Shown: positions 42,329-58,755 of the stretch, piece after piece
How the letters are laid out: the number at the start of each line of letters is the position of its first letter
How positions within the stretch are numbered: the stretch's first letter is position 1
NCBI GenBank assembly: GCA_965202585.1
Contig: OZ241826.1
Span: 52,452,001-52,516,000, forward strand
Length of the DNA: 64,000 nucleotides
Direction: 5' to 3'
From: Thalia democratica
Taxonomy: Eukaryota
Translations under genes and position numbers: made by a program
Notes under the pieces: model-generated
Seen by the model: only the letters and a program-made list of their open reading frames with translations
Databases searched by the model: none
What the model was told of the DNA's origin: nothing

Positions 42329-43446
42329 ATAAACATATTAGTGAGAACGTAACAGGTCGTAGAGTTACACATGGACTGTTGTTGATTGTCGTGCGGTTCA
42401 GTTTATTGCTAATTGTGACGGCGGTAAAACATCTAGGGTTTGCTGACGATGTTCGAAAACGTTGCTACTATGTTAATATTTTTTATTTTAAAAAGTATTC
42501 AAAACAAAACATCTAATGAAATAAGCATTGAGTCAGCAAAATAATATACTCATAAGCAAAACAGGCGTAGTTGTAGACTTTTCTTAAAAAAAACTTTAAT
42601 CGTCCATACTAAATTAGCATTTTCTAGCTTAAAGTACGTTGCTTAACATAATTCTTTTATGGTTTATTTAAAAAAAAACACTTAAAAAAGTCTAAAAATG
42701 ATAATACTGAAACGCTAATTCTATAGTAAACTAAAAAAATTAGGTCTTACCTTTTTTCATAGTGCTTAATTTTTTTTTTTCTTTAACAGGTATAAGTTTT
42801 CTAGATATATAGAATAACTAAAAGTAGAGATAGCTGTTAGCATAATAAAAATATGGCTTGGGTAAAATATTTGAAATTATTTATTCTTTATTCAGTAATA
42901 GGATAAGTAAGTCGATTTTTTACTATAACTGTTTGACTTAAAGAAGTATTTTTATAAAAATTAAATTTTTATAAATGTCGAGTTTATTCAATAAGCATTA
43001 AGTAAAGTCCACAACATTTTAAGCTGACCTAGAAATGTCATACATTTGTTGGGTTAAATATTGCAGAAAATTTTAGGTATTGCAGTATTTGCAGAACATG
43101 CAAGCACGGAAGTTACGAAATGATAATTTATACTTTATTTATTTTGACGTTTATAACATGCGTCTTTGTTAATTACTTTTTCAAAGGTCAAATAGTTACT
43201 ATATAAGCAGTGATTTAATTCATTCTCCATAAGACTCAAAAAGCTTAAAGCAAAGTTAAATAGGAGTACAATTTGCGATAAATTATTTTTTTATAAATAT
43301 AAAACACTTAAAAGTTGTTTAAAAAATATCTAAAGTTAAAAAAACATTTATTATAGTATTGTAAAGAATATACTTCGAAAAAATACTTCAAAATTGAAGT
43401 TTATTATTTTCAGCTTAATTACTTTAGTAGTAAATAGGATTCAAAC

Positions 43447-46400
43447 ATGAAAGCAATTTTAATTTTATTGGTCTTGTGCAGTTACAGTTAGTTTGGCCCT
43501 TTTATGTTTTACCAAGCGCTTTTTTTATAAACTAATTATTTTTTTCGAGTATCAAAACAATATTATGGTTCAATTACCACTTCTAAACTTAAATTTTTGT
43601 TCGATTCTCAATTTCATTATCATAAGTTTTAATTACTTTGTATCATACCATAACTACTATACTTTTAATTAATAACTTACTTTAATTATAATAACTAGAC
43701 GTATTTTAACTTGGATAACTAATCAAACTTTATCTTGAAAAGTAACGAGGTTTTAAATATTAAATTATAGTAGTTCACTAAAAAAGTAAATTATTAATTG
43801 ACTGTATTCAAATAAAAAACCATTTAAAGCTTTAGCCAACCAGCAAATAAGCATTGGAAGTGATATAGTGACAAAAGTAGGAGAGAAAGTTGAAGTGTTT
43901 TGTAACTCAGACAACTACTACAGATACGGAAAAAGATACAACAACGGTTAGTTCGAAAAGAAAACAATTCCATAAAAGTATCAATTTTCAAAAATCACAT
44001 AGTATTTATGCATAATTAAAGAAAACAAAAATAATTTTGTGTTAAAAACTAAATTCATTGTCTTATTATTTTGCAAATGTATATAATTGTACAACAAAGC
44101 TTGTGATTACTTTTAAATAACTTAATTAAACTTTAGACGCAACTCCGACGCAAATTAAATGGTACATAGCCCCAATAATAGATGATTACTCAACATATCA
44201 AGCTCTTTGGAAATGGACTAACAATTCGGAAAGTGTATTCTTCGAACAAGATTACATTTCTAAAAATAAAGTGAGCGTCAGCGAAAATGGAGATATTCTT
44301 ACTGTTAGTTTTAAATCTATTAGACTAAATGCAACGTGAATATTTCAGATGAATTAAATATATTTTATATTTTATTAATTAGAGCTGATATTCGATTAAA
44401 ATTAGTTTAAACTTCGGTTAATTTTTAGTACAGTTTTGTATGAAATAGTTTAATTTACTCAGTTTTAAGTGAATCAACTTAAAACAGTACTATGTAGTAA
44501 TTTTTATTTGTATTTATGTTAAAATTTTATGCTGTTTCACCTTAACAAAAATCAAATTAAATTACGTTCAATCGTATTTATAATTCTTAACCCTAACGTC
44601 TTTTCAATAGTTGACACCAGATATTCATGACGATGGTTTAAATATTTACTGTGCTGCTGAAGAAGATGTTGAAGTATTGTGGTTCGGAATAAGTCAGATC
44701 AGTTTATACAGTCAGTTTTTATTGAGCTTAGAACTACAATCAGAACACTATTAAAGTTACTCAGAATTTATTTAAAATACATATTGTTCTGAGATATTTG
44801 CAAGGACAGTTTTAAAAAAAGCTAAAAAAGTTTTTAGAAAAACATCCAAAAACATTTTAAAATTTTATTAGTTAAGGATTTTGAATCCATTTAGGTCTTA
44901 AAGTCTTTTTATGTTTCATATAACTTTTTTTCAATTTTCAGAACATGCAAACAACCCAACGGTTTTGAGAAGAAGCGGAGTATTAGGGCAGCAGAGAGAA
45001 AAAATTGGAGGTTGTTTGTCGGGATTCGGTTACCCGAAACCAAAAGTTACCTTCTACCAAAGTAATTTTAAAACTTTTGATTATGAAATTCTAAAATGTC
45101 ATTTTCGATTTAGCTGCAATATTTTTTTCAAAATTTGATGATTTTTTTCTTATCTATATAGTACTAGTATTTTAAACACACTATTAATTTATTTAAGACG
45201 GAATTGAAATAGAAGATGTTGAAACAAGTGAGCTAATTTTACCCCACATTGATGGTTTTCAAGTTAGTTGTAAGCTTATTTACAGATACTTATAAAACAG
45301 TAATAAAATAAACAAACAAAGAAGTAAAGGGGAAAAATTCAGTTTTTTCACTAATAAAAATTCTAAAATAGGGATGGGCAAGTTACGGCCTGAACAAAAC
45401 TTATATTATTTTATAAATCTTGAAAAAAAAGTAGCTTTTAAACATGTTATAACTTTAATCGCGACTAGGCTTCGGTGTTAAATTTTTGGTCACTTTCTTA
45501 TAATTTTTTCGACCGACAAAAAATCTGATATTTGTTTTAAAAACACGGCAAGCCATGAAAGTGAATGTTTAATAAATTTAACCCGTAAGAACAAAGACGT
45601 TTTGCCTGTCGACTTAAAAAGTTATCCGGCCCTTATATAAAAAATACTAATTAGATTATTTAGAAACCATATAAAATTTTTAAACTTAAAACACTTTCTT
45701 ACTTAAATAGAAGCTTAGCTTGCTTCTGTAACATACAAATCAACTAGACTAGCACAATAAGTATAAAAAAGTTTTAAGAATTATCAAAAAAAACTTTAGA
45801 CTGATAGCAATATAAAATTAAAAAAATTAACAGGTATCAGTGTTGAAAGTATTGTTTATGGAAATAGATCCAGAAGACCACAATACAGAAATCACATGCA
45901 GGGTATGACTTGTAAAGAGCTTACACAACTTCTAAAATACTTACTAAAATTTTTAATAACCACAGGTCACCAGTGGTGTTGAGCCTTACATTAAAAACAA
46001 AGTTAGATTTCTCTCCAGCCCAAAAGTATACCGTAAGTAATTTTGTTGTTAACTACTACTACGTACTATCAAGCCTTTCAACAAGAAATCTTAATAAATT
46101 AAAATGAATAGAAAGTTTAACTCATAAGTAGCAAAAAAAAAACATTTGAATACTTATTCAAATTCGTAAAAATAAACATCAAAACATAAATCTGAAAACT
46201 TGTTTTTAAGTTTGATTTAAGGAAGTTTGGTTAAAAGAGTTTTGTTAATGTCAAACTATATGAGTATATATAATATAAATTCTACATAGTATTTTTCTAC
46301 CTAATCTAAAACTTAAGCTGAAGTTTTGTGTCCTTAGTGTAACAAACTTCTAGAATTTATTTTTTCTTACAGTTGTACAGTACTTAACATACCATGTTGA

Positions 46401-49400
46401 AAAAAATAAACCTTTTTAAACAGACGACTTTAGTGAAGCTTGGATTGAGACCGACAAGGAAGAAAACAAATTTGAAGTAGGAGACATTGTTGAATTCAGA
46501 TGCATGTTCAATGGATACCCAAAAAACGCTCGTGTTTCAAAGTAAGTTGTTTTAACGAAAGTTTTTGACAATAGTCGGTACGTAAAAAATAAAACTGTAA
46601 TATTTTAATCTATGTAAAGGTTTGGATTCGAGACAGGTAACTATAAACAGAAAGAGACAATCAGACTTCGAATTACCGAGCAAATGAACAACCAAAATAT
46701 AATCTGTGAAGTCCAGGACGACGACGAAAATGAAACAGTAAAAGCTGAGTATAGAATAGAACTTGTCGGTCAGTTTGAACAAAAAGAAAACAACCGACAA
46801 ATTTTGTAGCTTTTTTGCTTTTTTATTATAATTAGTTATGTTAGACCGAAAATCAATAAAGATACTGCGACAAGTGGATTTGATACATATACAATCATTA
46901 CTGAATATTTAATAGACTAGTTCTATATTTGATATATTATTGTTAGTTTTTATACGTAAACAATTTGCTTATAAGTATTTTAAGAATAATTTTTAAATTA
47001 TATAACAACTCCACAAACCAAATTTTCCTATCTAGATCTAATGTTTTATACCTATCTTTTTTAGTTATTGCTAATTTTCCATAACTATTTTGAATTCAAA
47101 TTAAATTGCTAGCTTATAAAGTTAATCTTTTACAGAAAAGCTGCGCAATGTTCAAGTAATGGGAGGTCACGTGATTCCAAGAACATCTGGATCTTTGAGA
47201 CTCACGTGTTTTGCTGATGCGCGCCCTATGCCAAAATTCCAGTGGACAAAAGATGGCAAACTAATGAGTGAAGGCGGTGAGTTAATTATCAAGAGTAAAC
47301 ACAAAATAATAGTTTATTTTGTGTTAAAGTTTTTCGGTTTCGAAGTTAAGAAACTGTAACAAAATTAAAGAAATCAAAACAGGATTATTACTATTTTTAG
47401 CTTTAAGGCTATTAAACTTATAGGAGTAATATATTTATAACCTTACAGCTCAAATGGAAGTGAATGAGCCTGGTTCTTATCAGTGCGTCGCTTCTAACTC
47501 CTTTGGAATGATCTACAGTGCGAATCACGAGGTCAGAGACGTTTTACCACCGAGCGTTTGGGTGACCACGGAAAACGACAGGGTTGAAGAAGGTGATGAC
47601 GTTGTCATGAACTGCTGGTTTAACTATGATGGTGGTAAGTTTAGTATATTTTTATTAATTCTTAGTTTTACTTTGTATAAGAAGTTTGTTTTCTATGTTA
47701 GTATGAGAAAAAATGTTATGTTGTACAGTTTCTTTAAAAGTATTTAAACAAAAGACAACTGACTATATAGTGTGTTTATTTTTATGCTAAAATCCAATTA
47801 AAAAAATCTATGGATGATCAATAACTTCGAATTAACTGAAATTTTAAATCATTTTTTAGATAAAAAATAGTGCAAAAGACTAGTTAAAAAATCTAAATTA
47901 GATAAAAAACTTTAACAAAAGCATAAACCAAGTATGTATATTAGAACTATACTATAGAGATTGTTTTAAAACGGTTAAAAATGTATATATAATGAACTTT
48001 AAAGAAAACAAATATCTATCATATTTATGGTGAATAAAAAAAACAGATGATCAAGACTACCATGTCAGATGGTTAGTAGTTAATGAAATATACGATGAAC
48101 AGCAAATAATTTTTGATTTTGGTGTACGTGGAAACACTAGTTTGTATGAAAACGATTTCAATGGAAAATATTCAACTAATGACGGAAGAGATCTTAAGGT
48201 TAGTAAAGCTTAAAGTGTTAAAATGTATTTAAAAAAAGTTTTAATAGATAAGATGGTTATATATAATAATAAATGTCTGTTTTCCTAAAAATAATTGATA
48301 AATAAGTATCATTAATCCATAACTTATTTAGTAACTATCAATTAGAGTTGTATTTGCTAACATTTTATATAGAACTCTAACGTTAGTCCTGTTCATTATT
48401 TTAAAAACAAGTTATACTCACTAAATTTAACATTTTTTGTAAATATATTAATATTTTTAAGATTTTTAATTTGTTTAGCTGATAGTGCAAAATACTTTTT
48501 TTGTTTGCATTTTGAATTTATAAGTAACAAAACACTTGTAAAAGTCAAATGAAGTATAAAATCAAATTTTTGATATCAAACTCAATGATGTCCTTAAATA
48601 AATACAGTAGACTACCGCTTAAGTACGCAAATTGAACCAGACCAAAAAGTGCGTACTTAGCACGGGTAGTGCGTACTTTTTGACGACATAGTATAATATG
48701 AAATTTAGTTGTTTGTTTTCTTTTTTACAACTAGCCACCAAATAATTAAGCCAAATAAACAAGTCTTTTTATTTAAATAACATTTAATACATTATTTTAA
48801 TCTGCAAAATTTTTAATTGTTTTTATGTGGTTTACTTTTTCTATAAAAAGTTTCTACATAATTGTTACATACATTTAATATAGAAAGTCAATGTCAGTCA
48901 ATGATATAAAAAGCTCTATAACAAAATCTCTAGTGAAGCAGCACTTGGTATGGCTCCTGAGCTCTATCACAAGCTTAAAAGCACCCATGTAAAATATCAA
49001 CGTTTGCTAAACAAAGCAGCCTAATCTGAGCAGGAAGAAAACCAAACAGCTCACACTTTTTGACATGATGAAGTAGAGCCAAGATTTTTTTTATTCTGAA
49101 TAGATTGCTATTCAAGCTAATTTTAGTTTATTTATTACTTCAAACCATTTTTCTGGTATTTGCTAAATTGTTTCGGTTTAGAATAAACCAATTTTTTCAT
49201 TTTCTATTAGTTTTTTTTTAATGCTTTTTTTTTGTCTTCTGGGTAAGTGCGTACTTAAGGCGAGGTGCGTACCAAAAAAAGTGCGTACTTAAGCGGTAGT
49301 CTACTGTAAAAGTAAACATAAGTTATTTACTGTGAAAAAAAAACTTCTAAACTATTCAAAAAAAGCTTCATTACAGATTCACAATGTTCAAAGAAGTTCA

Positions 49401-51813
49401 AATGAAACGTACTATTGCAATTTAATAACTTTAGATGGTATCGCTTACAACAGTACAGAATTTTATGTTTTCGGTTAGATTTTTTTCAAAGCATTAAATT
49501 TATAAATTGTATATCAATATTAATAGTAATAAAAATAATCAGAATCAAATGAAGAAGAAGCCTACGAAGAAGAGGATTTTAATAACGATAACAACCAAAT
49601 GCAATATTTTACAACCCAAGAATCTTACACACAAAATAAAGAAAACGTGAACAATGATGATGAAGAAAACATGAACAATGATGATCAAGAAAACATGAAT
49701 AATGAAGATGAAGAAAACAGAAATAATGATGATCAACAAAGCATGAACAACCAAGATCAAGGAAACAAAAACGACCAAGATCAAGAAAACATAAACAATG
49801 ACGATAAAGAAAACATGAACGATGAAGATCAAGAAAAAATGAACAATGACAATGAAGAAAACATGAGCGACCAAGATCAAGAAGTCATGAACAATGAAAA
49901 TCAAGAAGATATTTGTATCAAGAGCAATGAAAATGAAAAAAACACGAGCGACCAAGATCAGGAAGACATGAACAATGAAGATCAAGAAAGCATGAACAAT
50001 GAAGATCAAGAAAACATGAACACTAGTACATTAGAAAATCAAACAACAGACAGCCAAGAAGACTACACTAACATGAATAAACAAAACGAAACTGTAGAAA
50101 CAACAACCTCTTATATGTATACAGATAATCAGTTTACTACAAATGTAGACGACTATGAAACGACTTATTCTGACAACAGTAACATAAACATAGAAGAAAA
50201 AGAGTATATTGAATATGTATATGAAGAAGAAATGTACGATGAAGGACTTTATGACGAAGCTCCATATGACGGAGAAGTGTATGAAATGAATTATGAAGAC
50301 ATGTACGACAATGAAGATGAAAACAATAACGACAGTACCTTTTTTAATACACCAGAAGTCACTACTGACACAAGCGTATTAGAAGATGAGATCGTAATAG
50401 AATCAGAAAGCAAAACACCTTCTGAGGGATTTTTTAAAAATATGAAAGATCAAGTCATAGAAATAGCCTCGGAAATGTTTACGCCTAATGAAGACAACAA
50501 CGATATAAATGAAAATGTTCAGACAACTTCTGCAGAATACTTAACAAGTACAGAAGAATTTAAAGAAATGCAGACGACAATGGAAACTACAACCGACAAA
50601 ACGTCAAAAACTGAAATGCCAAAATTTAACAAAACAGATGGTAAGTAGAAAATAGTAACATTAAAAAATGTAAGGGACATTATTATTAACACAACTCATT
50701 GTTTTAGAATTTTCAAGCTGTTACTTTGATGTAAACGAAGATGATTTTTATTCAATGGGATCAAACAATCAAGATTTTGAAATTTACTTTATGAGAGAGA
50801 AAAATACCATTAAAGACTATTCATTCTACAACCCTGATGACGACTATTCAGGTATTTTTAGTACTAGATGTTAACTACGTTTGAAAACAACAAAGATGAA
50901 AATATAAGAAACGTTTGTTATAATTTAGTTAAATATAAAAACATTGTTTATTTTTTGTTTACTTTTAAAAATGTTACTTTTGTTTTAATCTAGCATTTAC
51001 TTCTAACTATTAAAACGTTAAACGGTGAATAAATCAACAGTTTATTTGTTTTTATAAAAATCATATTAGTACTAAAAATTTCTTTGCAAACTAGTCTAAA
51101 TAAAAAAAATGTAAACTAAAAGCTACAGTTTTACTAAAAGAGCTCAAATTTTTTTTAGTTATGGTCAAGTCTGTGTCATTGAACGGTAAAAAACCTATGA
51201 AAATGACAAAAGTCGAAGTTTTCACTTTTAACTTGTTCCAAGATGATTCGTGCTTTGTAACACAAGATCAAACAGATATTTCAAATTGTGAACATCAAGT
51301 AATCGAAGCAAACCGACCGAAGCGTCGTTTGAAAGGCTCTATCATAATTGAAAATGAGTTCAAACAATGTACCTTTGTTATGGGGTAAGTTTTTATAAAT
51401 TTTTATGCGTATCAACTAGATTAAAAATATTGATATATATATTAAAGCATTTTTTAGGGAATGTTTTTGATTTTTAACATAAGAGTTGCTAGTACACATA
51501 ACTTTAGCTAAAGACTTTTGACTTGGTTTAAAAAAATGTTTGCGTTTTATAATATACATTTTATTTTACAACTTTTTTTAAACTTTTGTACTTCTGTAAT
51601 TATAAGACTTGTTTTTTAGATACTACCGAGTTAAGTTAAAGTTAAGTTTAAAACCATAACATTTTTCTTAGTGTATTTTCTTTAAGGGTAAAAGTATTCA
51701 TGGAAGATGGAAACAACTTTTATCAAAAACTTCACCCGTATGATATGATAAACTCAGACGAAATTATGAACAAAAAAGCTTTTTTCATGATTAAACCAGC
51801 CGAAAATCACTAA
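43447..51813 (+). CDS. Secreted five-Ig-domain protein with polyacidic repeat and novel C-terminal domain, 1054 aa; join(43447..43486,43830..43946,44137..44303,44611..44692,44942..45061,45198..45262,45834..45902,45966..46032,46424..46541,46620..46768,47136..47276,47449..47634,48047..48198,49377..49473,49543..50640,50708..50851,51159..51384,51687..51813)
   Basis: All 17 introns are GT-AG and phase-compatible, giving one open 3165-nt frame. Signal peptide MKAILILLVLCSYTLA; five Cys pairs with Ig motifs (VEVFC..IKW..IYC; GGC..GYPKPKV..ITC; EFRC..NGYP..IIC; LRLTC..PMPKFQWTKDG..GSYQC; VVMNC..VRW..TYYC); no transmembrane helix seen. Confidence 0.88.
48605..49306. mobile_element. pogo/Tigger-derived MITE (702 bp) in intron 13 of the Ig gene
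   Basis: Perfect 25-bp TIR cagtagactaccgcttaagtacgca / tgcgtacttaagcggtagtctactg with TA flanks on both sides; a short interrupted coding-like stretch inside (about 48890-49070). Confidence 0.92.
49641..50021 (+). repeat. Coding 24-nt tandem repeat, about 15-16 units of E-N-M-N-N-[D/E]-D-Q
   Basis: Units ENVNNDDE, ENMNNDDQ, ENMNNEDE, ENRNNDDQ, QSMNNQDQ ... ESMNNEDQ read directly from exon 15. Confidence 0.95.
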
Positions 51814-53439
51814 TACTGTATAAAATTCTTTTGTAGCTAAAATCTAGTTACTTTTATATATTTATATACCTCTTTTTTACTTATTCAAATTATCTAAGTA
51901 AACCTGTTTTGAATTTAGATAACGAGCATTGCTTTACATGAATAAAACTAATTTTACTGCTTCATATGTCTTTTTATTTTTAATAGTTGAATTTTTTTAT
52001 AATAACTGACTAATTTTAATTTATTTTGTGTAATTTTTACTTAATGAACCACAATAAAAGGTCTCGACTTAATGATAAGGAGAATAATCAACTCAAGTTT
52101 TTGAATTTTATTAACAAAAGAATGTGTCGCTCGTTTGAAATAAATCAAACGAGGTCATCAGTTGAATAAAATCAATTTGTATTAACATATTATGTAAAGC
52201 TATAATTTTAAAAATCATTTAGTAACGTTATTTCAGAAATAACTATTTCTTTTGCAAACTAAAAAACGCTTATGTTTGTAAGACTACTAAATAAACATAA
52301 ATTAAGAAAAGCTTAAATAGATTTTCAAGTAATAAGCTTAACCGATTAGATTGGAACCTATACTACTTTTCGGTTTTCTTTGTTATGTTAAATAAATAAA
52401 CGATTGTTTTATTTTCGCAAATTTCCCTTAAGATTTTTTATAAAGTAAACAAAATTTTGTTTTACCACCATAAACTAGTCAAAAAGGTTTCATAAACAAT
52501 TAAAACTAACTCTAAAAATTATGTAACAAATATTTAAAATGTTATGCAGCGGTTAAAGCTAAAAACAAATTGTTTGTAAAGTAAAGTTTATTAAATAAGT
52601 TAAATAAATTGAATAACGGAAGCAAAGTAAAAAGACCTGATTAAAAGAAAGACCTTTTGGGCATCGAGCTACACATAACTTATCTATTTTAGCTTTTTTG
52701 AGCAGTTTAAATGTTATTCTAATATTAGAAACTTAATTTTTACAAAACCAAGAAAAATGACAAAAACATACAAAAAAAAAGTCATGATACTTATATAATA
52801 AATTTAATTTAGTTAGTGGAAAAAGTTAAACGTATAAGTTAAAGCGTACTAATATGTTAAAACTTATAAATTTGTTAAAGTTAATCTCTATTTGATACCA
52901 ATGGCGTCGCGTGGGATGGAACGCTGGAGCTGTTGCTCCACCCAGAAAAAAAATAAAAAGAAAGTGTATATAATGTTTCAGTTTTAGAGTTTAAGCTTTT
53001 AAAGACGCTGCTTTAAATGTGGCTCTGCTTGAACTGTACCGTCCTTAACTATATTAAAAGAACTATATTTGAAAACTGAAAAATTAAGCTTTAAATCAAT
53101 ATAATTTTTTTAAAGTTAGCTTTAAAAATAAGCAAGTTATTCAGTATTGAAGTTGTAGAAAAAATACTGCTAAATGCATACATGAAAGTAAGTCGTTAAT
53201 TTCTCTACTAAATTAGTTTTTTTACAAAATTTTATATTTGATATTCGAAGTGTTCGTATAATTAGAGCTGCAAGCTAAATCTGTGTCAGTTGCATTTTAA
53301 ACGTATACAAATTTCAATACAAAAATTTGTTGACTGGCTTAATACTGGAGCTGCATAAGCTTTCAGCTCCATAAAAATTGAAAATCATAGTCCTTGTTTA
53401 AAACTTGCTACAACGCGAGAATAAAAAGACAGGTAATGA

Positions 53440-55893: not shown

Positions 55894-56904
55894 TTACATT
55901 ATAGAATAGTTTGTTTTTGTTGCTGTAAAATTTTCAGTACGAGAAACCAAATCTTTTGACTGGTTGCTTAATTTCTTCTTTACAGTTTTACACTTTACAA
56001 AAACACTAAAACTAAACTTTTCAAATGAAACAAAAAGAGATACTATGTTTACACATAGCCCGAGATCAAATATAATTCCTGTGAAATCTCGAGGTGTTGT
56101 ATCAGGAAGTATGATTGAAGTAAGGGCGAGAGCACACAGGTCTGAAAAAGAACACAAAACTAAGCTTCCAGTCGCTAATTTTGTTGCTCTCTTTAAGCGG
56201 TTGTTAATTTTTAACGAGCTTTTGTCACTGCTTCTAGCTTTATTTTTGTAGTGGTTCAGGGGATAAACAAAAAGAGCAAAAATAATTACCTGTGACATTA
56301 CCATTATGGATATCGCGATATATCGCATTATTTCGTTAGTGTTTTCCTCAGAGTTTCTTATACACCCATAATCAGACATCAAGTAACTTTTCGGAACGAC
56401 CAATAATACAATAATTACTATTCCTACTATAACCAGCAGGAAAATTGCGAAAGTACTCAGAAATTTTACCAGCTTTGTGTTAAGTGGTTTTAAGGAAGAT
56501 TGAGAGTAAAGAATTCGTTGTCTGGTCCATAAAAACAAATATATTGGTAAATTTGACATGTAATAAAGTACTACTGTCAAGTCTGTGACAACTTCGCAAA
56601 CATATTGACCATTTTTTTCATCATCAGCTAATGTTCTTCCAACTATTATAATTGCCTGAGTGCACAAAACTTTTAAGCAAGTAACGCATGGAGTCAGGAC
56701 AGACAAAAATACCAATAAAAAACTTTTAAAGTTTTTGTTTGAGTTTTTCCAGTTACTGTATCCGAACCTATACAATGCAACTGTAGACCAAACACAAAAA
56801 ACAAAATTAACTATAGTTAAAGCTTCTGATGGTATCCACATATACATAAAAATTGAAAACTGAGTTGTATTAGAAGTGGTATTATTCAAACTACTTTTTG
56901 ACAT
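55894..56904 (-). CDS. Intronless orphan seven-transmembrane (GPCR-like) protein, 336 aa
   Basis: 1011-nt ORF; the real ATG is at 56904 (the track start at 56913 is TTG). N-terminal sequons NNT/NTT; seven hydrophobic segments; Cys at the top of TM3 (YVCEVV) and in ECL2 (DYGC); LFLWTRQR in place of DRY; FVYPL at the end of TM5; basic cytoplasmic tail. Confidence 0.85.
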   Translation of the reverse strand: MSKSSLNNTTSNTTQFSIFMYMWIPSEALTIVNFVFCVWSTVALYRFGYSNWKNSNKNFKSFLLVFLSVLTPCVTCLKVLCTQAIIIVGRTLADDEKNGQYVCEVVTDLTVVLYYMSNLPIYLFLWTRQRILYSQSSLKPLNTKLVKFLSTFAIFLLVIVGIVIIVLLVVPKSYLMSDYGCIRNSEENTNEIMRYIAISIMVMSQVIIFALFVYPLNHYKNKARSSDKSSLKINNRLKRATKLATGSLVLCSFSDLCALALTSIILPDTTPRDFTGIIFDLGLCVNIVSLFVSFEKFSFSVFVKCKTVKKKLSNQSKDLVSRTENFTATKTNYSIM

Positions 56905-58755
56905 TTTTGCCAAATAATTATTCTGTAATATTTTGAAAATATTTATAAAACTTGTAACTTCTTATGTATTAGTTTATGTTTTATGCAAAAAACTGCTTAA
57001 ACAAACTTTTTCACAAACTATAATAAAAACCTAATAAAATAAACTATAACTAAATACTAGAGTATAAAAGTATTTAATCTAATAAATTAATTACTTTCTA
57101 GTATTGTAGTAAACATTTCGTCTGTAAACAACTAAAAAAAAACCTTTAAAAATCGATTAACTAAAACTTTTTTCTTATTGATGACGATCTATTTGTTATA
57201 GTGACGTAGTTAAACTTTAGTTTAGTTGCTACTCGTTGCACAACTTCTTTTTTAAACTTCCGTTACTTTCTTTTTTATTTCGAAATATTCTCGAGTGATT
57301 TATTTTTAAAATACCGATAGAAGAGTATCATAAAAATTAAAAATATATTTTTTGTACACATTGTTACTATAATATGTTACTTTTTGTTTATCTTTATTTT
57401 CACATTGTTACTTTACTGTCCATCTGAATGTATATACATTTATTACCACCTGTTAATTTAAAATTTTTAAGCTAACTTATTTAGAAATTTAATATTACAG
57501 TAGTGAAAATTAAAATATTACGGATCGAAATACTTATTAAAGCTTTAAAACGTCAATCTGAAAAAATGTATTTGAGTTTGAAGAAGTATTTAGTATGATT
57601 GCGCTAAAATATAAAAATATATATTATAAATAAAATCATAAACATAAAACACTTGAGATTTTTTTAAATTTTTTGTACAATCTTAAGTAAACAATTAAAT
57701 TACGATCTGAAGTTTTTTTTAAGTTTTTTAAGTTTGATTGTAGTAAACCCTACATTTTTTAATATATGTTTAGTTAATGTTGTTGTACTGATAGCCTAAA
57801 AAATTGTTTGTCTTGATGAGGGCAGGTCAACGATTATACTCAGGCGCTAGGTATGAAAAAACAATAATTCTTGGTGTGCAACATAATTTCAATTTCATTT
57901 AAGACAAAGAAACTATTTAATTATCTAATTCATTTCAAAAAAAAAAACTGGTTTTATGCATTTTTTCTAAGGAAATTTCAAATCTAAGAATACCTATTGT
58001 AAGTTTAAAAACAAAGTTTTGCAGGTCAGCTTTAGATGGTCACAGGCCGCAGTAATATCTATAGCGGGTTAGATTCCACTTACAATATTCATAATACATG
58101 GTTTAATTCTACTTATCACTTTTATAACAACTTTATGGTATTATATTTTATTTTAAACTGAATAATAAAAAGCTCTCAACTTATGTACATATAAAAATAC
58201 AATTTAGACTTTATTTTGCTGATTATTTAAAACATTACAATGTTTTACCTCTATAATAATTTAAATGAAATAATCAGTTGTAAAACAGTTCTAAAAAAAG
58301 AGTTTAAATAGTTTAGATTTTTCTTTTGTAAAGCTTCGTAAGCATAGTAATATTATGAACAAAAATTAGTACACTAAACTATAAAAAGAGTTATTAAATA
58401 AACTTTTTTACTAGAGTTATAACAATATAAATCAAAAAATAACAATCAAATATTCGGTCTATGTTTTTTTTTCTGTTGTTTTTCTTAAGTAAACTACTTT
58501 ATAATGAAAGCTGAGATAGTAATTGTTACAAAAATTTTTATATTAGTTTATATTAACAATTAAACAATTAAAAGCTATTTGTATTTTAAAAGTATACAAC
58601 AGTCTAGTGCAAGTCCATATAAATTTAAAAAAGGAAAAAAATCAAGAAAGAATGAAATTAAATTTAAAGCCGTTAGCCCATTTGAGAAGAATAAACTAGG
58701 TACTAAGAGATTTAAGACATATTCTCTTAGCTAAACAAAGCATTCAAGCGCAAAC

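Follow-up and report, generated by a model that had tools for sequence, protein, structure and literature searches.

The gene and its transcript

The gene described here lies in Thalia democratica (GenBank assembly GCA_965202585.1, contig OZ241826.1), within a stretch of 64,000 nucleotides (positions 52,452,001 to 52,516,000 of the forward strand) that we call the window and on which all coordinates below are counted. It occupies positions 43447 to 51813 and encodes a signal peptide, five immunoglobulin (Ig) domains, a long polyanionic linker and a C-terminal cysteine-containing domain. The contig is of 100-Mb scale and belongs to an assembly of 802 Mb. The sequence around the gene is very AT-rich, with 22–33% GC; the figure for the genome is 25%.

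Translation of positions 43300 to 52300 in three frames revealed a series of short open segments in which Ig-like motifs occur, a single long acidic frame and three further segments of coding appearance. Joining these segments at GT-AG sites yielded 18 exons on the plus strand and a single open frame of 1,060 residues, closed by a stop codon at 51811–51813. The ends of exon 1 (43486) and exon 4 (44710) were set by comparison with orthologous cDNAs; the corresponding donors are GTTAGT, at 43487, and GTCAGT, behind exon 4 (44611–44710).

Transcript evidence was drawn from contigs of four marine RNA runs, belonging to two studies, that were aligned to positions 46400–52399; the gene stretch was also present in three runs of unrecorded type from two organisms. 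The contigs crossed introns 9 to 13 at exactly the predicted junctions (46541/46620, 46768/47136, 47276/47449, 47634/48047 and 48198/49377), and likewise introns 15 to 17 (50640/50708, 50851/51159 and 51384/51687). Exon 14 ran contiguously into exon 15 in two contigs (X3 record 8 and X1 record 2), with seven masked letters at 49543–49549 between them, and the loose end of a contig before 46424 corresponded to the last 30 nucleotides of exon 8, marking the junction of exons 8 and 9. Upstream of this point, exons 1 to 8 are supported by two full-length ortholog cDNAs, L005 and L006, which are collinear with the window protein from the first methionine, residue for residue, across every junction. 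At the 3′ end, a tail of 19 adenines began near 51962 in run X2, about 150 nucleotides beyond the stop codon and behind an AATAAA signal at 51941–51946. RNA depth was zero at 52000–52399 in all four runs, and no downstream exon was seen there. The gene is thus a genuine, transcribed, multi-exon gene. The contig junctions and the poly(A) site show that the transcript runs from the Ig exons into exon 15 and finishes about 150 nucleotides past the stop at 51813. An earlier note, made from the DNA letters alone, had proposed this 18-exon model and had named two findings that would overturn its reading, namely a downstream transmembrane or glycosylphosphatidylinositol (GPI) exon replacing the 51813 stop and transcripts that fail to join the Ig exons to exon 15. 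The junctions from exon 8 to exon 18 in RNA, the ortholog cDNAs over exons 1 to 8, the poly(A) site and the identical terminal residue of the orthologs bear the model out, and neither of those findings emerged.

Phase-1 introns lie at most domain borders, between signal peptide and Ig1, Ig1 and Ig2, Ig2 and Ig3, Ig3 and Ig4, Ig5 and linker, and linker and C-terminal domain. This is the usual pattern of shuffled extracellular modules. Skipping of exon 15 would remain in frame (1,098 nucleotides, 366 codons) and would join Ig5 straight to the C-terminal domain.

The ortholog cDNA L006 also bears on the 5′ end. It starts with a remnant of the template-switch oligonucleotide, followed by a 16-nucleotide spliced leader (SL), ATTCTATTTGAATAAG (L006:9-24), joined at the position homologous to 43414 of the window. 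The same leader has been reported for Ciona (PMC1488885). A homologous acceptor, ttttcag, is present at 43407–43414 of the window, 33 nucleotides upstream of the ATG, and to judge from this match the window gene is probably SL-trans-spliced. The leader also supports placing the organism among the tunicates. The features are collected in Table 1.

Table 1. Features of the gene, in window coordinates
Feature	Position	Strand	Evidence or remark
5′ untranslated region	43414–43446	+	Behind the predicted SL trans-splice acceptor (ttttcag/C); by homology to L006, absent from the window's own reads
Exon 1: start codon and signal peptide MKAILILLVLCSYTLA, predicted cleavage after TLA	43447–43486	+	Kept in L005 and L006
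Exons 2–4: Ig1, V-like, residues 17–142, C38–C122	43830–43946, 44137–44303, 44611–44710	+	Collinear with L005 and L006
Exons 5–8: Ig2, C2-type, residues 143–248, C166–C225	44942–45061, 45198–45262, 45834–45902, 45966–46032	+	C2-set_2
Exons 9–10: Ig3, short C2-type, residues 249–337, C275–C317	46424–46541, 46620–46768	+	Junctions in RNA contigs
Exon 11 and first half of exon 12: Ig4, very short C2/I-type, residues 338–416, C362–C397	47136–47276, 47449–47543	+	Pfam, PDB, RNA
Second half of exon 12 and exons 13 and 14: Ig5, V/I-like, residues 417–529, C440–W455–C511	47544–47634, 48047–48198, 49377–49473	+	Ortholog Pfam, RNA
Exon 15: polyanionic disordered linker, 367 residues, residues 530–896	49543–50640	+	1,098 nucleotides, symmetric phase 1
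24-nucleotide tandem repeat, 15.6 copies, octapeptide array of MNN(D/E)(D/E)QEN type	49639–50022	+	Tandem Repeats Finder
Tyr/acid pentapeptide run YIEYVYEEEMYDEGLYDEAPYDGEVYEMNYEDMYD, residues 751–781, candidate tyrosine-sulfation cluster	50205–50297	+	Sequence context
Exons 16–18 including stop: C-terminal domain, 164 residues, residues 897–1060	50708–50851, 51159–51384, 51687–51813	+	Junctions in four RNA runs
3′ untranslated region	51814–51962	+	AATAAA at 51941–51946, poly(A) addition near 51962

Residues 1–16 form a signal peptide that is conserved in the orthologs and constitutes the sole strongly hydrophobic stretch of the protein. No transmembrane helix was detected: beyond the signal peptide, the Kyte-Doolittle score of 19-residue windows peaks at 1.44. 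Nor was there a GPI-type tail, as the C-terminus, ending in NKKAFFMIKPAENH (...IKPAENH), is hydrophilic and conserved in the orthologs. By these signals, the product is secreted and carries no membrane anchor. We hold the anatomy, expression and secretion signals of the gene with high confidence.

A single-copy gene shared by three plankton lineages

An exhaustive HMMER search with exon 17 returned only two true relatives, and a word-index search with one of these added two partial proteins. The exhaustive search used the 74 residues of exon 17 alone and the word-index searches needed shared 5-mers, so that relatives below about 35% identity could escape them. Cluster members and the contigs that carry them, from metatranscriptomes of the Tara type, then gave full-length or long cDNAs. 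Among these, L005 (4,878 nucleotides) is a partly processed pre-mRNA that retains an outron and intron 15, and L006 (4,261 nucleotides) is an SL-capped ortholog cDNA; the proteins P0016 (824 residues) and P0021 (983 residues), from two other lineages, each consist of one uninterrupted frame that covers Ig3, Ig4, Ig5, the linker and the C-terminal domain. The ortholog proteins end at the same residue as the window protein. The candidates P0003 to P0005 were rejected as relatives of exon 17, their matches being inflated by repeats; P0003 is an FN3-repeat phosphatase-like protein whose single repeat gave an hhalign probability of 2.4%.

Three lineages thus share the architecture: the window species, a close relative and a more distant pair. 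In the C-terminal domain, the window protein is 86% identical to the close relative at a synonymous divergence (dS) of about 0.25, and 66–69% identical to the distant pair at a dS of about 0.6–0.9. All genome matches to the Ig array and to the profile of the C-terminal domain fell inside this gene, which indicates a single copy without paralogues. RNA of open-ocean plankton was the only source in which orthologs turned up. We found neither a full-length match to a characterised family nor the architecture anywhere other than in these three related plankton lineages.

Two irregularities were observed among the orthologs. In the P0006-type lineage (L006:2590-2640, L002 and L003), an insert of about 22–23 nucleotides in the acidic region, composed of a hairpin-forming inverted repeat and a run of nine adenines, shifts the frame and splits the open reading frame (ORF) into an 858-residue Ig and acidic part and a 442-residue remainder; three contigs of different assemblies carry it. 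In this lineage the C-terminal domain still gives a ratio of nonsynonymous to synonymous substitution rates (dN/dS) of 0.38 against L005, a value calculated from few changes. The insert may represent a true truncation, a polymorphism or an artefact. In P0016, the nearest relative, 13 residues (ENDRVEEGDDVVM, window residues 424–436) are absent around residues 133–136, at the start of Ig5 and before its first cysteine, which may reflect a deletion, alternative splicing or faulty assembly.

The Ig array is of the V/C2 kind and strongly constrained

Pfam was applied to the window exon by exon, and whole-domain Pfam and structure tests were done on the orthologs, which are 80–95% identical domain by domain. 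Among the window exons, C2-set_2 matched exons 5 and 10, Ig_3, Ig_2 and I-set matched exon 11, and Ig_2 and Ig_3 matched exon 12, Ig_2 with its C-terminal half and Ig_3 with its N-terminal part. The match of exon 10 covered positions 52–85 of the 89 in C2-set_2 (E 0.003) and lay below the Pfam cut-off. Exon 11 matched Ig_3 at 2e-5 and, in the PDB, Ig domains of DSCAM, contactin, axonin and neurofascin at 2e-9 to 2e-7. In the ortholog ORFs, matches rose above the Pfam cut-offs for C2-set_2 on Ig2 (49–52 bits), Ig_2 on Ig4 (28–37 bits) and Ig_3 on Ig5, where Ig_3 spans residues 416–510 and V-set spans 428–511 at 25.6 bits against a cut-off of 26.

Ig1 had no Pfam match, in either the window exons or the orthologs. 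The cysteine pair, the tryptophan and the D-x-G-x-Y-x-C motif are nevertheless present in it (C38...W61...DDGLNIYC122), and by language-model features the domain lies closest to V-set clusters; Ig1 and Ig3 are assigned solely from motifs, sub-threshold matches and such features. The five cysteine pairs are spaced 84, 59, 42, 35 and 71 residues apart, and the unusually short Ig4 (35) has its exon junction confirmed in RNA. The array therefore displays the hallmarks of the immunoglobulin superfamily (IgSF), namely profile matches, cysteine pair, core tryptophan and D-x-G-x-Y-x-C. Taken as a whole, its language-model features are nearest to fasciclin-3-like and ALCAM clusters. Outside the clade, searches with the array brought up nothing closer than a fish IgSF protein at 24% identity, which is no near homologue, and a metagenome scan with exon 12 gave no confirmed relative. 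AlphaFold modelling of the five-Ig region of L005 from a four-row alignment reached a predicted local distance difference test score (pLDDT) of 33 and a predicted template-modelling score (pTM) of 0.28, and no structural claim is drawn from it.

Against L005, the dN/dS of the array was 0.10 overall, with 0.28 for Ig1, 0.08–0.10 for Ig3 to Ig5 and 0.024 for Ig2, the most constrained part of the protein. Judged by its sequence, the array is of the V/C2 (nectin/ALCAM/fasciclin-3-like) kind and is under strong purifying selection.

The linker keeps its negative charge and a candidate sulfation cluster

The linker carries a net charge of −95, with 30% Asp and Glu, 18% Asn, 16% Thr and Ser, five prolines and one cysteine, and exon 15 had no Pfam match. 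Its first half contains the 24-nucleotide tandem array, whose 15.6 copies match at 71% and encode octapeptides of the MNN(D/E)(D/E)QEN type. Indels were observed in this region among the RNA contigs, and relatives differ in copy number or carry other sequence rich in Asn, Glu and Lys. The second half aligns across all lineages, with a Thr-rich stretch, pentapeptides of the form (x x x Y D/E) and the blocks EIASEM... and TTSAEYLT.TEEF. Linker length ranges from 366 to 581 residues, a 1.6-fold change, while the net charge in the three lineages is −94, −115 and −103. Lys and Arg together account for only 4–8% of residues, though AAA and AAG codons are expected to be favoured at 25% GC. The dN/dS of the linker was 0.30–0.42, and that of its second half 0.38–0.42.

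Clustered tyrosines among acidic residues, with no basic neighbours, are the classical context of tyrosylprotein sulfotransferase (TPST). In the Tyr/acid run of the window protein, each of the seven tyrosines has at least four Asp or Glu and no Lys, Arg or His within five residues on either side. Acid-flanked tyrosines number 7–11 per lineage, and the run is kept or expanded in all three lineages. The genome contains TPST homologues, with a match to human TPST2 at 8e-22. Tyrosine sulfation in acidic contexts has been documented, and the sulfotyrosine-rich acidic extension of fibromodulin acts as a glycosaminoglycan (GAG) mimic, binding collagen as well as heparin-binding proteins (PMC7310474). 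Three features by which the tyrosine-sulfated GAG mimics are recognised, as a functional class and not by homology, were found here: a secretory protein, clustered acid-flanked tyrosines and the presence of TPST. The class is further marked by sulfate on the tyrosines themselves and by binding to basic or heparin-binding partners. From its context, the run looks like a candidate tyrosine-sulfation cluster. Two multi-exon Sulfotransfer_3 loci were located at C9:18.00 Mb and C8:36.25 Mb (L007-L009), the first exon at C9 matching human TPST1 and TPST2 at about 1e-21; the genome may hold two tyrosylprotein sulfotransferase genes.

An orphan C-terminal domain completes the architecture

The C-terminal domain has four invariant cysteines (C900, C975, C987 and C1014) and an abundance of Phe, Asp, Asn and Lys. 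It matched no Pfam family at E up to 10, whether exons 16–18 were searched singly or the whole ortholog domain was used, and it had no sequence relative in the PDB and no Atlas neighbour. Searches for long proteins carrying it (262–835 and 541–1,720 residues, shared 5-mers being needed) returned the same clade only. AlphaFold, given three sequences, produced a beta-rich model of low confidence (pLDDT 60, pTM 0.64), and four fold searches with this model yielded only generic Ig-like and E-set sandwiches at background scores. No match to the Pfam family fn3 (fibronectin type III, FN3) was found after the Ig array; a generic FN3- or E-set-like sandwich would still be compatible with the low-confidence fold. 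The dN/dS of 0.23–0.32 indicates purifying selection. We regard the domain as an orphan that probably forms a disulfide-bonded beta-sandwich.

The architecture is therefore real, is conserved in a small clade and is a variant within the IgSF that carries an orphan domain. This agrees with the earlier note, which had described a secreted protein without transmembrane helix, as the single hydrophobic stretch and the hydrophilic C-terminus now bear out, and a V-like domain, three shorter C2/I domains and a second V-like domain in that order, which Pfam, PDB, motifs and language-model features support. Its estimates of about 365 residues for the acidic tract and about 165 for a beta-rich cysteine domain come close to the lengths in Table 1, the beta-rich character being that of the predicted model. 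A full-length match to a characterised family, which it had named as grounds for abandoning the claim of an unrecognised architecture, did not appear.

Surroundings of the gene

Intron 13 contains, at 48603–49308, an element of 706 bp with perfect 27-bp terminal inverted repeats, TACAGTAGACTACCGCTTAAGTACGCA. The genome search gave 1,460 candidates, of which 40 were scored; many were full-length at 85–98% identity, and there was also a family of partial matches of about 313 bp. By its sequence features, the element looks like a recently active non-autonomous DNA transposon resembling a miniature inverted-repeat transposable element. The RNA contigs of X2 and X4 that lie on it probably derive from other copies. 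The nearest long ORF, about 4 kb downstream of the gene (55894–56913, minus strand), is intronless and encodes 339 residues with several hydrophobic segments, resembling a seven-transmembrane protein.

Possible roles of the protein

Pelagic tunicates are enclosed in a secreted tunic and process great quantities of seawater with nets that they likewise secrete. Most likely, though we put this forward tentatively, the protein is secreted and acts as a bridging protein of matrix or mucus whose linker mimics a GAG. It would serve as an extracellular bridge, either soluble or bound to the matrix. Its Ig array, which evolves slowly, would recognise a conserved endogenous partner at the cell surface or in the matrix, and its C-terminal domain would attach to a second component or oligomerise on it. 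The linker, which probably bears N- and O-glycans as well as the sulfotyrosine cluster, would form an extended, hydrated, GAG-mimicking tether that binds cations or basic proteins. The protein could act in the tunic, in the mucous feeding net or in some other extracellular layer. The dN/dS of 0.10 for the array, and of 0.024 for Ig2, fits a fixed endogenous ligand. The combined mechanism of bridging and polyanion is inferred with considerable reserve. We regard as improbable a bolder version, in which the protein would be a thaliacean-specific structural organiser of the feeding net or tunic, the linker serving as a protein-encoded GAG substitute that pairs electrostatically with basic Tyr-rich secreted proteins and the four-cysteine C-terminal domain founding a new extracellular fold family that docks on the net or cellulose matrix.

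The conserved charge and the conserved sulfation-type cluster can be read as the result of selection for large negative charge, laid over a slippage-prone repeat. Several observations weigh against the bridging and polyanion reading. The first half of the linker is that slippage-prone 24-nucleotide repeat, and its charge in the most distant lineage is far weaker (−0.10 per residue), so part of the acidic tract may be neutral filler; the conservation of net charge is drawn from three lineages only; and an isoform that skips exon 15 was not seen in the RNA contigs, although contigs drop rare isoforms and cannot exclude one. In one alternative, the protein would be a soluble IgSF ligand or a modulator of adhesion of the ordinary sort, whose acidic tract is mostly a neutral, AT-biased by-product of slippage and a passive spacer at most, its charge having no specific role. 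The tract is built from AT-rich codons (AAT, GAT, GAA, CAA and ATG) in a region of 22–33% GC, its array of 15.6 copies with a 71% match varies in copy number and sequence between lineages and within the sampled population, the first half in the distant lineage is only weakly acidic, and the Asn-rich inserts of other AT-rich genomes offer a parallel. Neutral slippage is nevertheless hard to square with a net charge that stays near −100 through a 1.6-fold change in length, with the scarcity of Lys and Arg despite the AT-rich codons, or with a second half that aligns in all lineages at a dN/dS of 0.38–0.42. We consider this alternative unlikely, while giving it more than passing weight.

The remaining alternatives concern the Ig array, the 3′ end and the acidic composition. 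A secreted immune recognition factor, in the manner of VCBP, hemolin or soluble Dscam, would use its Ig domains to bind microbes filtered from seawater and its polyanion to tether them in mucus. A secreted Ig protein of a filter feeder, with V-like domains at both ends of the array and transcripts recovered from bulk plankton RNA, is suggestive of such a function. However, the gene is single-copy without paralogues, its array is under purifying and not diversifying selection, and no chitin-binding or lectin domain was matched. The strong constraint on the array together with the single copy favours an endogenous partner over variable foreign targets, and an immune role appears rather improbable. 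Given that IgSF proteins of the ALCAM/nectin kind are normally membrane proteins and that contigs drop rare isoforms, an alternative 3′ exon might make a membrane-anchored adhesion receptor the main product and the secreted form a minor one; yet all contigs of the four runs join exon 14 to exon 15 and share the same poly(A) site, RNA is at zero over 52000–52399, and the cDNAs or proteins of three lineages have the same secreted end, which leaves this explanation very little room. Finally, 30% Asp and Glu in Asp/Glu/Asn repeats recalls, in composition only, the acidic matrix proteins of shells and teeth, so that a Ca2+-binding biomineral matrix protein active in spicule or other mineral formation comes to mind. 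The linker contains no poly-Asp or phospho-Ser-rich motif, however, and the clade is planktonic with a tunicate SL, its orthologs occurring only in open-ocean plankton RNA. To our knowledge, pelagic tunicates have no spicules or mineralised skeleton; mineralisation is therefore unlikely, and we give it scarcely any credence.

Secreted multidomain proteins that are specific to one lineage and contain low-complexity inserts are common. Our literature search found no molecular description of the materials that make up the nets or tunics of pelagic tunicates. The gene is a well-supported, expressed and clade-restricted candidate for a net or tunic component, in which a conserved recognition array is combined with an orphan domain and with a polyanion of conserved charge. 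Should the linker prove to be sulfated and to bind basic partners, it would represent an independent invention of a protein GAG mimic outside the vertebrate small leucine-rich repeat proteoglycans (SLRPs); if not, the protein would be one more lineage-specific secreted IgSF member with a low-complexity insert in an AT-rich genome. The verified gene model, the splice junctions and the ortholog set make the gene directly testable.

Comparison with known systems

ALCAM/MCAM/BCAM, nectin and fasciclin-3 offer the closest likeness in the Ig part, with a V-like domain first and CD80-like C2-set domains, and ALCAM also has five Ig domains. Fasciclin-3-like proteins and ALCAM form the nearest language-model clusters, and C2-set_2 is the best Pfam family. 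The order, however, is V-V-C2-C2-C2 in ALCAM/MCAM/BCAM and V-C2-C2-C2-V/I here, which departs from the order of that subfamily. The transmembrane helix and cytoplasmic tail of ALCAM/MCAM/BCAM and nectin are absent, and identity to any such protein is at most 24%. Unlike proteins of the ALCAM/nectin kind, the window protein adds a 367-residue polyanionic linker and an orphan C-terminal domain. The GPI-attachment signal of IgLON and contactin is likewise lacking, the C-terminus being hydrophilic. The VCBPs of amphioxus and Ciona are similar as secreted Ig proteins of invertebrate chordates with a non-Ig C-terminal domain. They consist of two V domains and a chitin-binding domain, whereas the protein described here has five Ig domains, no chitin-binding match (E up to 10), a single gene copy and a conserved array.

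The linker has its own counterparts. Gel-forming and PTS (proline-, threonine- and serine-rich) mucins differ from it, as it has five prolines and 16% Ser and Thr, with no vWD, CK or other polymerising modules in the protein. Its long, disordered, charged and probably glycosylated centre, encoded in one large repeat exon and flanked by folded modules, is shared with acidic low-complexity matrix proteins and mucin-type linkers. NCAM is similar by functional analogy, in that five Ig domains precede one or more beta-sandwich domains and a large polyanion stands beside Ig5. Its domains are five I-set Ig and two FN3, its polyanion is a glycan (polysialic acid, on Ig5) and it has a transmembrane or GPI anchor, whereas no FN3 was detected here. 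The class II SLRPs fibromodulin and osteoadherin share a cluster of tyrosines amid Asp and Glu in a secreted matrix protein. They are leucine-rich repeat proteins, with no homology to the window protein, and the window run, as a sulfation candidate only, sits inside a far longer linker rich in Asn, Asp, Glu and Thr. It is in function, and not by descent, that the linker may resemble protein GAG mimics such as the N-terminus of fibromodulin.

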